A stretch of 64,000 bases of DNA from Phyllobates terribilis. Its lineage: Eukaryota. Of this stretch, positions 19,639 to 34,549 are shown in pieces. Position 1 is the stretch's first letter, and every line of letters begins with the position of its first letter. The translations under genes were made by a program, and so were the position numbers. The DNA lies in the NCBI RefSeq assembly GCF_046119375.1, contig NW_027362767.1, forward strand, positions 415,214,001 to 415,278,000, in the 5' to 3' direction. The notes beneath the pieces were generated by a model. The model had not been told where the DNA came from. It did no database searches and saw nothing but the letters and a program-made list of their open reading frames with translations.

Positions 19639-22600
19639 CTAATCGTCTCCCACCACCTCGTTTGTCATCGCTCCACTTGGCTTTATTCCATCCTTGTCCT
19701 TCTTCCCTTTCTTTCCTCTTTTGCCACCACACTGACACCTCTGCACCCACATAACCTGGCGGGTGACCTTCCGGTTGAGTTGGGAACACCGAAATAACAC
19801 CGGGCGCGTCTCGCTCAGTGAAGGTGTGCACAAACGTCCATCTGAGCAAAGGCCACAGAATTTGGGAAGTAAGGGGCGGCTTGACAGACAGTCACGGAAA
19901 CGGAGATGTGACGGGTGGGACCAGCGCATGACATGGCTGCAGACGTTGTTTGCCTTCAGGACCTGCCGGAAAAACAAGAGGATAGAAATAATAGAAACCA
20001 GTATAATTCACAGCCTAAAGCTCGGCCACATAGCAGATGTGTCTGATATCACTGAGCGGGGGCCGGCCCCGGGGTTATGCGAGTCTTTGGCTTACAGTCT
20101 CGGTAGCCCCTCTTCGCTTTCAATTTTTTCTCCAACTTTTTCTATTTGCATCAGGACTTGTTTTTCTATTTGTGGTACGAGCTACAGTTATTATCATTAC
20201 TATTTTTGGGGTCCGATTTCTTTTTATTCAATTTTTTCCGGCGAGGAGGAAAAGTGGCATCAAAAAACAGCAATTCTGCATTTTCAATGTTTTGGCATTC
20301 ACCGTATATGAAAAATATTATATTTTATTAGTTCAGACACCATGTGTATATATATATATATATATATATATATATATATATATATATACACACATTCCAG
20401 GAAAATATATGAACTTTTATATTTAACTTTTCATCTTCTTGGTCCCCTAAGGGAACTTTAAATCACATATACAATACATAATAATATTGTAATAATTGCA
20501 GTTTATTGTACAACTACCTTTCTCCTATGAAGCCCAGTCACAGGTATGCAGTCACTGGAGCCTTCGGTAGGCCCCTGTTTGCCATTAAAACGCCATTAAC
20601 TCCCAATAATTTTGTTGCCCCACCTCCCCCCGCAAATATTATCCCAATGCCAATCTCTTAAATGCCACTGTCACAATTGAAAACAGGATCTTCCTACAAT
20701 CAAAGCAGTTAGACTCAGGTGCCAGCTGTATAATACTGCCGGCACCCTCCCCTTATGGAGAGGGCTACACTCCGGAGCCCCCTCCGCACATGCAGTGCAT
20801 ACATAGAGTCTAGGCCGAATGGCTTTTCGCTTCACACATTGGGCCCCGGCACTTGCCCCAAGTTTTCTTGTGACCCTCTTCTATTCTTACCGTGTAGTTG
20901 GCGCTGGGGTATTGGCCCTTGCAGGGTCTGATCATACAGATCCTCTTCTCAGCTTTAGGGATACAAGTTTCCTTCTCGTAGATTATTCGCACCGAGTTCC
21001 CAAATCCACATGTGCGGGAACATGGTGTCCACTCAGTATCTGGTTGGCAGTGGAGAGGTTCTTCCGGCGGTTCCTCATCCTGTTCTGGATCTGCGGAACA
21101 TAATGAATATGAGATGTTGCATAACCTTTGCTTATTGCTGGATGGAGAATGAGGTAACCAAGGATCTGTCAGTGAACTTCTTCTAACAGGAAAGTTTATA
21201 ACCCTTATCTTTGTTCTTCTGAGCTCCTCTCAGCCAATTTAGGACCTAATGGTTCAGCTCAACTTTCACGTGGTCAGAAATCAGCTGTGATCAGAAGGAA
21301 GATGAGAGGTATAAACACTTCTGTCAGAATGAGCTCACTAATAGATTCTCAGTTAACTCATTCTGCAGCCAACAATAGACAGTGTGACACAGAGTCTATA
21401 GGAGGAAAATGGTGCAACATTTTTTAATTGTTCCCATTTGCAAAAATTATTTTTAGCCAAAAATACATCCATCTAATAAAAATAAAATGCCTTTAAGGGG
21501 GTCCAATTTTTTTTATAAAAGTTGTCCAGGATTAGAAATACAGGTCTGTCTCGGATACTTTTAAAGCCATGGGCCATAGAAAAGGTTTTGCATTTATAGC
21601 ATAAGACTGCCCAATCAAGTAACTCCTAGAAGACTTACAGGGACTTGTACATACTTGGAGGGCACTTTGCTGACCTCCTTTTCAAAAGTTTGGGGTAAGA
21701 TGGATATTTAGGGAGCACAGATGTACTAACTAATTCATAGAACCGATTCCTTACGCCATCCATCTTATTATTTATTTATATAGCGCCATTGATCTTATGG
21801 GCGGTCACTTGTCACTCGGACGTTCTTGCACCATCGCGTGTCTCCTCTGCCACCACCACCCACATATCTATTCCGACCCCCGTATTAAGCTCCGCACTCA
21901 GATCTATCTCACCACCTGAATCAGCGGCGTCTCTTCTGGTCCTGATATTTGCCTCCTCATCCGTAGACTTATCTTCTAGAGTTGGGTAGACATTACTGGG
22001 TTCAGTTGAGTCTTCAAGCCCACTTGACTCCTCCAGACATCTCCACTGGGCACAGCACTGACCTGGAACTATGAGAACAGTCCGTATGTTAATGAACGTC
22101 CTTACAATGGCCGAAGTATGAAATGTGGAGAACCCAAACAAACCCCCTGATCATAAGATCGTCACAAAGGGTTGCACAGGATTCAGAAAAACATGGCGGC
22201 TTTCTTCTAAAAATGGGACCAAACCTGTCAATGGGTTGTGTCTGGTACCACAGCTCATAAACAGGAGAATTCAGCTCACCCTTGATGGAAACTAATACAA
22301 GTTTCTGGTGTGGAGAAGCCCAGAGTCTCGTTTCTGCCTGACGTTGGTTATGATTGTGAAGAAGGTGAATCCAGCTTCAATCCATAAAATGTAAATCCAA
22401 AGCCGAGTTTAAGAACGCAGCAGTCGTTCGAAACGCGTCCGGTTTCACCTCCTTGCACCCTCATCCCCAATCATGACTATGTCTAGGCATATTTCATTGA
22501 TACCATGTTCACTTTTAATCATGAAATAAAGGATTTAAATTTTATGGATTGAAGCTGAACTCTAGTTCTTCACAAGCATACCACAGCTCGTCCCCATTGA

Positions 22601-31875: not shown

Positions 31876-34549
31876 ATGACTGGTAGATACACCCATGCTG
31901 TAGTCAGAGGGGTGCCCTCCTCTCTGGCGCAGGAGGCGGACGGGAAGGTGGACCTGGCAAGGGCGCAGAGGGAAAGTGGAGTCTTCTCGGGCATCTTAAG
32001 ACAGAAACTAGGGCTCCAGGTGATGGAGCTTCCTCCAAATGAAGAGCTACCCCGAGGGCAACTAATCGGTGACATGGCAGTGGTAATAGCAGATACGGCT
32101 TTAATCACCCGTCCGGTAAACCCTGCCAGGAGAAAGGAGGTGAGGTCTGGGTGTGATTATGTATGCAGCCCATCTTGGTTTCATAATCTACCATCTGCTT
32201 GTTCGTCCCTCCTCACCCTTTGCTCTTCTCGGTCTTCCCCCTCAGACAGAAGGTTTGTACAAGTTGTTCGAAGAGTTGAAATTTCGAGTTTACGAACTTA
32301 CAGATGAAAGTGCCACGTTGGATGCCAGCGACATCCTTTTTACAGGTGAGAGATTCTCTGAGGATCCTCGGGAGGAAGAAGGTTGGGGTGGACGGATGCA
32401 GCATGAGACCCTTTAAGGTCGGGTGATAAGATGGTGGGGGTGTAGAAAACACTTACAAGAAAAATGTCTAGAAATGTTGCTGTGGGGGGGGGGGGGGGAC
32501 AACTATGCATAGAAGTATTGAAAAGTCATGGCACCTAGGATGCTGCGTTTCTACCTGTTCAATACTGTGGAGATGCCAAAAGTTTGTAGTCTGTAACCAG
32601 GAGACACATAGGTCTGTATAGGGGCTGTATACAGAAAAAAAATTGTGTGCAATGGAGCTGAACAATAGTATATGAATCACTTAAATGTGAAACTGCATCT
32701 AAAATTGGTCTTCTAGAAGTGAACTTGGTTAAAAAGAAAAAAAAGTTTACGGTTTGTTGCCAGAAATGGCGCCACACAACTGGCCAGGTCTGGTATTGCT
32801 TGGTTTCATGCGATCTTTGGTTTGATTTATTTTTATTCTAACTTTTTTTCTTGCAGGTACAGAAATCTTTGTGGGTTTGTCAAAGTGGACCAATCTCCAA
32901 GGCGCTGAGATGGTGGCAAAGACCTATCAGGTAGTAAACCAAATGTTAATGTCTGTCTGGTACCACTCCTATATTGATGCTTCGATTCCCCCTGACACCT
33001 GTACTGTTTAATGTGAATTGTCACTTCCCTGACCGATGGCTGTCCTCACCTCCATACATATGCAGGCTCGCTTCAGCCCACTGTGCAAAGGTCCTGAATT
33101 AAAGGAAGGAATTAACAGCTGCCAAACACCTCTGGCGGCAGCTTATCTTCCATTAGAATGAAAAAGATGGGGCATGTTGAAATCAATCAGCCTGATATTC
33201 TCTACCATTGACACTTTGTCATGGGGGGGATGGAGTCTGGGCACCTCTGTACACATCAGATGGCTTGCCAGTCACCCGGGTTAATCTAATGCGTATGGCC
33301 AGTAAGTACTGGATTGACCTGCAAAGGTCCTAGCCAACCAAAATGGCAGATCTGTACGCAGTTACACATTGCCTTACACATTTAGGTTTGCTGTCTTCAT
33401 GTTGGCTCTCAGGCCTGTCCATTCTGCACGCTTCCTGGAGGAAACAGCTGAGATCTCCAACTAAACTTTCAGTGTTCATTAAGAACCTGTAGAACCCTCT
33501 AAAGATGTCTGGACTCTGTTTTTCTCCTAGGATTATGCAGTTTCCATCGTACCAGTTACAGGAGAATTGCATCTAAAGAGCTTCTGCAGTATGGCCGGCC
33601 CCGACACCCTGGTGATCGGCAGCAGCAACACGGCGAGAAGAGCTCTGAAGGCAAGTCTGGATTGTTGGCAGGTGGAAACAGTCGGCGTTCTCCTTGTAGA
33701 AGTATCGGCTCACCTCCCGGCTTTCTGTATAAATTGAAGAAAAATGTAAACTCGACCTTCTCTCTTTATCAGATGATGGAGCAGCTGACGGATCATCACT
33801 ACGAGACGCTGACTGTGCCCGACGATGCTGCCGCCAACTGCATCTATGCTCGCGTGGGTCCCAAATCCAACGTCTTGGTTCATCGCAGCGCGGAGGAATA
33901 TCCCAACAGTGTTCAGGTGATGGTCCCTTCCCAGGGGGTAGATACAATAAATGCCACTTCTGTGCGTCCACTGGTGACGGGTGGTCTTTTCAGATTGGTT
34001 GGTCCTGTCCCTGTTTTTAATAGTAAAAGGCGCTGTACTGTCAATCAGAACCTGAAAAGACCCACATTTCTACCTTTTGCTTTGAAACCCCTAGTTCTCC
34101 ATGTGCACTACTGTGATTTGTAATGTCGGTGTGTGTCTCCCAAAGAGTGTTACAATTTTTTTTTTTTTTAGGGGAGTTCTAAATTTTGGGCTCATAATAC
34201 AAGCTTATTGTCCTTGATATTTAGAGCTTTGTATTAAAAACACACATGTGATGCCTTCTGCTTCCACTAGGGGGAGCTCCCGTCACACAACAGACAGAAT
34301 TGGGATCAATGGGAGATGTATGCTGTGAGCTCCACCTAGTGGTGGCATCAGACATCATTTTATCACTTGCCAAATTAAAGAAATCAGATTACTAATGCAG
34401 GTCTGGTGTAAAATATATATATTTTCTTCTAGGTTTTTCAGAAGTTGACAGATTATACACTAGTCCCAGCATCTTGCACAGAAGTGTCGAAGATCGGAGG
34501 ATGTCTGACCGCCTGCTCTATACTGATAAACCGCAAGCTGGAACTCTGA
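31876..34549 (+). CDS. ddah2: Dimethylarginine dimethylaminohydrolase 2 (272 aa)
   Basis: Exons 31876-32139, 32246-32345, 32857-32930, 33531-33650 (GC donor), 33773-33916 and 34433-34549. [33 protein letters not shown] and [11 protein letters not shown] motifs. The PRGQLIGD segment is DDAH2-like, and the position between clic1 and mpig6b matches the human MHC. AATAAA at 34849-34854. Confidence 0.92.

Follow-up and report, generated by a model that had tools for sequence, protein, structure and literature searches.

The CCN family is treated as a set of six tetrapod genes, and a CCN phylogeny of 2019 lists six in Xenopus tropicalis (PMC6610741). An additional gene, described as a "novel ccn1-like" gene of the axolotl met1 region, lies near setd2 and map2k3, has a short hinge, and does not belong to the major histocompatibility complex (MHC) (PMC6473073). 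In the human MHC, the class III order is LY6G6C, C6orf25, DDAH2, CLIC1, and MSH5, with no CCN gene, and no orthologues of DDAH2 and CLIC1 were found in zebrafish (PMC1309616). Here, we analyzed a window of 64,000 nucleotides from the frog Phyllobates terribilis (contig NW_027362767.1, positions 415,214,001 to 415,278,000) that carries a further CCN gene, termed CCN-X throughout, divergent from a DDAH gene. An earlier reading of this DNA (the original prediction) had taken the gene as a genome-duplication sister of CCN1 and had stated that the human MHC holds no CCN gene between CLIC1 and DDAH2, with which the published class III list agrees. We consider it probable, at roughly three chances in four, that CCN-X represents an ancient and previously unnamed group of CCN1-type paralogues, located next to ddah2 in MHC class III and derived from the early genome duplications. 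No description of an MHC-linked CCN gene was found in the literature searched; in databases, the gene is already present as a prediction, with names that disagree.

CCN-X is an intact, spliced, and transcribed gene. Its six coding exons run in frame from 24568 to 19639 on the minus strand between canonical AG/GT boundaries, and the resulting coding sequence of 1128 nt specifies a protein of 375 aa (Table 1). The transcript evidence comes from two studies, of which four public runs supplied contigs that we aligned to positions 19200 to 24900. Single contigs of 856 to 1303 nt skipped exactly the five predicted introns, and every joint showed CT..AC ends, i.e., GT..AG on the minus strand. The joint between exons 1 and 2 (24503/24420) was present in contigs of the four runs, exon 3a was delimited by the joints 24216/23143 and 22964/22068, and 21916/21090 was recovered in 4/4 runs. 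The six-exon structure of the original prediction is thus borne out by contigs of four runs that join all exons at the predicted junctions. These contigs span 24594 to 19458 altogether, whereas read depth within the introns was essentially zero except at repeats, and the runs therefore behave as transcriptomes. The sole coding variant in the reads, at position 21050 in exon 4, is synonymous (His215). Exon 1, which was located by hydropathy and a donor scan, encodes a 22-aa signal-type peptide (MASYIEFALMLLCVTCTLGKRL) and is homologous to the N termini of the ranid and Ranitomeya orthologues. Exon 3b ends in tandem donors placed 3 nt apart, at 21916 and 21913 (CAG/GTG/GTGAGA). Transcripts from the window use the upstream donor, and the Ranitomeya prediction, with the additional Gly expected from the downstream donor, appears to use the latter. 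The four-domain CCN open reading frame that the original prediction had described on the minus strand, divergent from ddah2, was correct in modules, strand, and orientation but not in length: its 376 aa correspond to the alternative donor at 21913, whereas transcripts give 375 aa.

Upstream of the gene, a motif scan together with the 5′ end of the contigs points to a putative core promoter. It consists of a CCAAT box at 24652-24648 and a TATATA element at 24627-24622, both on the minus strand, the latter beginning 33 nt upstream of the 5′-most transcript base. The same type of scan revealed no TEAD, SRF, or AP-1 motifs in the 800 bp upstream of CCN-X. The 5′-most transcript base (24594) is separated from the DDAH start codon by 7.3 kb; the two genes are divergent, and a shared promoter is not implied at this distance.

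To place the protein among its relatives, we used a maximum-likelihood tree of 61 proteins inferred under the site-heterogeneous LG+C20 model, built without amphioxus, lamprey, or hagfish. The tree separated a CCN1 superclade from CCN2/3/5 with support of 100/99. It recovered CCN1 proper (100/94), which extends from catshark to mammal; a clade termed T3 (100/99), with shark, lizard, two caecilians, and some teleosts; a clade termed L (100/100), made up of ray-finned ccn1l1 and ccn1l2; and a clade termed X (97/97), which contains the window protein. Two sharks are basal in X, followed by coelacanth and lungfish and then by caecilians, salamander, and anurans, so that branching inside the clade follows the species tree. 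CCN-X thus belongs to the CCN1 superclade without being part of CCN1 proper, and it is also separate from the fish ccn1-like genes of clade L. The nearest sister of CCN1 proper is T3 (93/96), not X. The Callorhinchus "CCN1" and the Latimeria "ccn1l1" were left unplaced in this tree, and a tunicate CCN fell outside the vertebrate groups in a quick tree. As judged by the trees, the split between CCN1 and X predates the divergence of cartilaginous and bony vertebrates; CCN1 proper and T3 each include a shark as well. The sarcopterygian X proteins have in common a set of rare features, namely the extra residue of a CGCGC motif and the loss of two CT cysteines, the first of the "CC" pair and the final one.

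Orthologues were collected first with phmmer, run exhaustively with the CT exon as query, and then by word and profile protein searches that were word limited and not exhaustive. The phmmer search unveiled three close clusters, i.e., ranids (268 aa, without VWC), Spea (386 aa), and Pelobates (847 aa, with repeated VWC units), and, after a clear drop, coelacanth, carp ccn1l1, and a sawshark came next. The cypriniform ccn1l1 proteins also lack the leading Cys of the "CC" in CT (e.g., DGRLCIP), and this shared loss explains their high rank in the CT search; it looks convergent with that of sarcopterygian X, because the two sit in different clades. The Ranitomeya orthologue (375 aa) is 89% identical to CCN-X over the tree columns and 88% identical in a pairwise alignment. 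Further anuran members were found in Mixophyes, Rhinophrynus, Hymenochirus, Pseudophryne, Hyperolius, Mantella, Pyxicephalus, Nanorana, and Pelodytes, and non-anuran members in the salamander Pleurodeles, the caecilians Microcaecilia and Geotrypetes, the lungfish Protopterus, the coelacanth Latimeria, and two sharks. Their database names contradict each other (CCN1-like, CCN2-like, CCN3-like, CCN5-like, CYR61-like, NOV homolog, and kielin/chordin-like). X was not found in Xenopus in the protein databases. No amniote member emerged from four protein-database searches, the last of which, a profile search, scored the best 8000 word-sharing candidates; genomes were not searched. These distributions modify what had been expected of the gene. 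Retention in amphibians was confirmed in anurans, salamander, and caecilians, but it extends to lungfish, coelacanth, and sharks. The expected loss in mammals agrees with the negative amniote searches, the loss itself being a deduction from them. Finally, CCN-X is a seventh tetrapod CCN as far as frogs are concerned, but seven is not the full count, as caecilians and a lizard keep T3.

By synteny, CCN-X sits in the MHC class III region, flanked by DDAH, Ly6, and CLIC1-like genes. The order in the window is clic1(+), ly6(-), CCN-X(-), and ddah(+), and DDAH, CCN-X, LY6, and CLIC occur in matching order in Spea. All six DDAH exons of the window match a 319-aa gene that is head-to-head with the Spea orthologue, the two Ly6 exons matched, by tblastn, the UPAR_LY6 gene located after CCN-X in this species, and the CLIC1-like exons are 77 to 89% identical to the CLIC gene exons of the Spea locus. 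DDAH exon 1 also matches human DDAH1 chains in PDB (E = 1e-20), a database that holds DDAH1 only; gene order suggests that the window gene is the DDAH2 orthologue. In Ranitomeya, CCN-X is followed by an LY6-type gene, and a divergent, unannotated 259-aa gene upstream is taken to be ddah2. In Microcaecilia, the X gene converges on a 241-aa CLIC gene. The conserved neighborhood was recovered in full order in Spea and in part in Ranitomeya and Microcaecilia. Neither the shark Heptranchias locus nor the Stegostoma locus displayed a neighbor gene within 10 kb. In gar, CCN1 and a DDAH_eukar gene form a head-to-head pair. Together with the pair in the window, this means that the CCN-DDAH pair exists twice and in the same orientation, a duplication that fits the prediction of a whole-genome event.

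The alternative that best withstands these data, albeit an unlikely one, is that X is a late, fast-evolving CCN1 duplicate that arose on the stem of sarcopterygians or amphibians and was inserted next to ddah2, with long-branch artifacts accounting for its deep position and for its grouping with two shark "CCN1-like" proteins. This reading is favored by the long branches of the clade (1.21 changes per column for the anuran stem and 0.91 for Latimeria), by a Heptranchias locus that displays no neighbor within 10 kb, and by sharks having neither the CGCGC motif nor the CT cysteine losses that mark sarcopterygian X. However, the approximately unbiased (AU) test rejected a single clade of sarcopterygian X and CCN1 proper (p-AU 0.006), and the site-heterogeneous model recovered X with its sharks not only in the presence of anurans but also upon their removal, when the clade was still monophyletic (94/91). 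A late duplicate is also at odds with the agreement between the internal topology of X and the species tree, as well as with the partner gene: DDAH has a second copy too, in the same head-to-head layout, and ddah2 is old, because it is present in the human MHC (PMC1309616).

The predicted CCN-X protein consists of a signal peptide followed by the four CCN modules. The hydrophobic core of the former (ALMLLCVTCTL) lies in the 22 aa of exon 1 and aligns with the N termini of the orthologues. Pfam detected the TSP1 module with confidence (PF19035 TSP1_CCN, 62.7 bits; curated cut-off, 27), while IGFBP scored slightly below its cut-off (27.2 bits versus 28). VWC reached 23 bits on exon 3a alone (profile positions 1 to 44) and 24.5 bits on the full Ranitomeya orthologue (cut-off, 27.6), and Cys_knot reached 16.7 bits (cut-off, 24). 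The IGFBP cysteines align with those of other CCNs. The corresponding motif, CGCRCTVC, has one residue more than the canonical GCGCCxxC, and this residue is common to all sarcopterygian X proteins, most of which read CGCGC where the window protein reads CGCRC. The VWC cysteine pattern is complete in the alignment, including PGQCCxxWxC. The CT exon had no match among PDB sequences at E <= 1. An AlphaFold2 model of this module, derived from 70 CT sequences, has a core with a predicted local distance difference test (pLDDT) score of 86 to 96 and a disordered, basic-then-acidic tail; its top fold matches are sclerostin, the VWF CTCK domain, Norrin, and DAN-family proteins (Foldseek probability, 1.0; template modeling score, ∼0.5). 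According to the model, the CT module of CCN-X has a CTCK-type fold.

CCN-X has 38 cysteines in total, 2 of which belong to the signal peptide. The remaining 36 in the mature protein depart from the 38 conserved in the CCN family, the missing ones being, within CT, the leading Cys of the "CC" and the final Cys, a joint loss seen in every sarcopterygian X protein. CCN5 and CCN6 also deviate from 38 cysteines, and therefore a count of 36 does not bar CCN-X from the family. The gene structure is likewise unusual, with six exons instead of the five of the family, which has one module per exon. The difference is due to an RNA-confirmed intron that splits VWC; this intron is also present in Spea but not in the shark X gene or in T3. 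Both VWC exons, 3a (180 nt) and 3b (153 nt), are of phase 1-1, so that their loss or repetition preserves the frame. In ranoid predictions (Rana, Lithobates, Staurois, Pyxicephalus, Hyperolius, Mantella, and Nanorana), exon 2 is joined to exon 4, yielding proteins of ∼268 aa without VWC, while the Pelobates and Pelodytes predictions, named "kielin/chordin-like," contain approximately five tandem copies of the VWC unit.

Some of these features could be read as signs of a locus that is transcribed but decaying, i.e., an incipient unitary pseudogene or a gene for a functionless protein: the subthreshold Pfam scores of IGFBP, VWC, and CT, the two canonical CT cysteines that are gone, the VWC exons missing from all ranoid predictions, and the fast turnover of the sequence, with 46 to 60% identity between anuran families. 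We regard such decay as very improbable. The reading frame is open over the six exons, and the five introns are correctly spliced in the four runs. Across five anuran families, 35/38 cysteine columns are invariant, compared with 91/301 (30%) of the other columns. Moreover, the CT cysteines were lost as a pair, which leaves an even number in the mature protein; the core of the CT model is confident; and orthologues persist from sharks to frogs. The conserved module scaffold argues for a functional CCN-X. As for a divergent gene of the CCN3, CCN5, or CCN2 type, which automatic names such as "CCN family member 3-like," "5-like," "2-like," and "NOV homolog" would suggest, it deserves practically no credence, since these names disagree with one another and with the "CYR61-like" or "CCN1-like" given to the same clade by other sources, the CCN1 superclade is supported by 100/99, and the AU test rejected a clade of X and CCN2/3/5 (p-AU 0.0009). 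Neither of the two outcomes that the original prediction had set against itself, a grouping with CCN2 to CCN6 through a recent transposition or a lack of spliced expression, was seen.

We therefore return to CCN-X as an ancient CCN1-type paralogue of MHC class III. In this scenario, which is the most likely one, the genome duplications of early vertebrates would have copied an ancestral head-to-head pair of a CCN1-type gene and DDAH, giving rise to X and DDAH2 together. Cartilaginous fishes, coelacanth, lungfish, and amphibians would then have retained X, and amniotes and ray-finned fishes would have lost it. Tree and synteny are the basis on which we infer both the duplication origin and the DDAH2 orthology of the neighbor. 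The proposed sister relationship to CCN1 stands with regard to the shared superclade and the paired DDAH, but not in its strict form, as the nearest sister is T3. By analogy with CCN1, the product of CCN-X would be a secreted, cysteine-rich, matrix-bound signaling (matricellular) protein, whose binding partners probably differ from those of CCN1. The CT module of CCN1 carries lysine-rich heparin/integrin alpha6-beta1 motifs. Anuran X proteins are devoid of most lysines at what we take to be these motifs and have the basic-then-acidic disordered tail instead. The missing CT cysteine pair, the new charged tail, and the replaced lysine motifs together point to a partner set unlike that of CCN1.

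Several points weigh against this explanation. The X branches are long, and the shark placement in X comes from the tree alone. MHC linkage of X is established for its amphibian members only, and the DDAH2 orthology of the window gene is drawn from synteny rather than from a tree. Absence from amniotes is a result of protein databases. Three of the four CCN-X modules score under the Pfam curated cut-offs. Finally, the "RNA" type of the runs is a guess, for which the absent intron coverage is the sole support.

A broader view, which we put forward tentatively and with slightly less than even confidence, is that CCN1-type genes form a complete four-member set generated by the two rounds of genome duplication in early vertebrates, with one gene per MHC-paralogous block: CCN1-DDAH1, X-DDAH2 in MHC class III, T3 with a DDX39-type gene, and ccn1l on the fourth. 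The synteny of the paralogues would fit such an arrangement. Teleost T3 genes are tail-to-tail with a 427-aa DDX39-type helicase gene, for which PDB scores do not separate DDX39A from DDX39B, although it may be closer to DDX39A. Of these two, DDX39B belongs to class III and DDX39A to an MHC paralogon. If this view is right, the CCN-DDAH pair belonged to the proto-MHC neighborhood, mammals kept one of the four copies, and X was among the ancestral genes of MHC class III and was independently lost in amniotes and ray-finned fishes. In Microcaecilia, the X and T3 genes are reported on one 535.5-Mb chromosome record.

The features of the window are compiled in Table 1. The donor of DDAH intron 4, at 33651, is apparently GC (AAG/GCAAGT), which is the only option that keeps the frame between ...RRALK and MMEQL... 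Tc1/mariner transposase remnants occur within the CLIC gene and at about 51 kb (window repeats at 2188-4593 and 50610-51626). A Ty3/gypsy-type pol (integrase, RNase H, reverse transcriptase, and protease) is found on the minus strand at 56.8 to 63.3 kb (56777-63335), and long low-complexity tandem arrays extend over 54409-56479 and 18216-19027.

Table 1. Coordinates of CCN-X, its putative promoter, and the neighboring genes in the 64,000-nt window
Feature	Position (strand)	Description
Putative core promoter	24622..24652 (-)	Upstream motif scan and contig 5′ end at 24594
CCN-X exon 1	24503..24594 (-)	Coding 24568-24503; 5′ untranslated region to at least 24594; donor GTAGGA
CCN-X exon 2	24216..24420 (-)	IGFBP-like module; RNA joints on both sides
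CCN-X exon 3a	22964..23143 (-)	N-terminal 2/3 of VWC; phase 1-1; 180 nt
CCN-X exon 3b	21916..22068 (-)	VWC end (VPGQCCAQWRC) and acidic hinge; phase 1-1; 153 nt
CCN-X exon 4	20891..21090 (-)	TSP1 module (WTPCSRTCGFG); RNA joints
CCN-X exon 5	19458..19962 (-)	Coding 19962-19639; CT cystine-knot, then basic, then acidic tail; stop codon TAG at 19641-19639; 3′ untranslated region to at least 19458
DDAH gene, ddah2 by synteny	31876..34549 (+)	Six coding exons, 272 aa: 31876-32139, 32246-32345, 32857-32930, 33531-33650 (GC donor), 33773-33916, 34433-34549
Ly6/uPAR-type gene (LY6G6-like)	13611..14084 (-)	Downstream of CCN-X; 2 exons detected: 14084-13953 and 13787-13611
CLIC1-like gene	1464..8476 (+)	Convergent on Ly6 and CCN-X; exons detected: 1464-1592, 7245-7433, 8291-8476; earlier exons probably outside the window

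To a family counted as six genes in tetrapods, this locus adds a seventh, expressed member in frogs. The CCN1 subfamily thereby gains a duplication history linked to MHC paralogons, and the list of ancestral MHC class III genes gains a nonimmune matricellular gene, to the extent that the proposed origin holds. The X proteins also provide natural variants of the CCN modules, with a VWC that is split, lost, or tandemly amplified and a CT that misses one Cys pair of the size of a disulfide. The contradictory database labels warrant one consistent gene name.

Among known genes, CCN1 (CYR61) is the one with which CCN-X has most to be compared. Both have a signal peptide and the IGFBP-VWC-TSP1-CT array, belong to a common superclade, and, in the case of gar CCN1, have a head-to-head DDAH partner. 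In contrast, CCN-X falls in a separate clade, is only ∼31 to 32% identical to gar and Xenopus CCN1, and differs in its six exons with a split VWC, the extra residue in the GCGCC motif, and the two missing CT cysteines. Its neighbors are ddah2-type, Ly6, and CLIC1-like genes, whereas CCN1 neighbors DDAH1. Fish ccn1l1 and ccn1l2 (cyr61l1/cyr61l2) resemble CCN-X in being extra CCN1-type genes without a mammalian member, and they are near matches to the CT exon; unlike X, they make up an actinopterygian clade of their own (L), and the gar member adjoins a DUF4647 gene, not DDAH. The axolotl "novel ccn1-like" gene may belong to T3. Like X, T3 is an old CCN1-type paralogue without a mammalian member, kept in Podarcis, Microcaecilia, and Rhinatrema, but it differs from X in being sister to CCN1 proper, in keeping the canonical cysteines, in its short hinge, and in its DDX39-type neighbor in teleosts.

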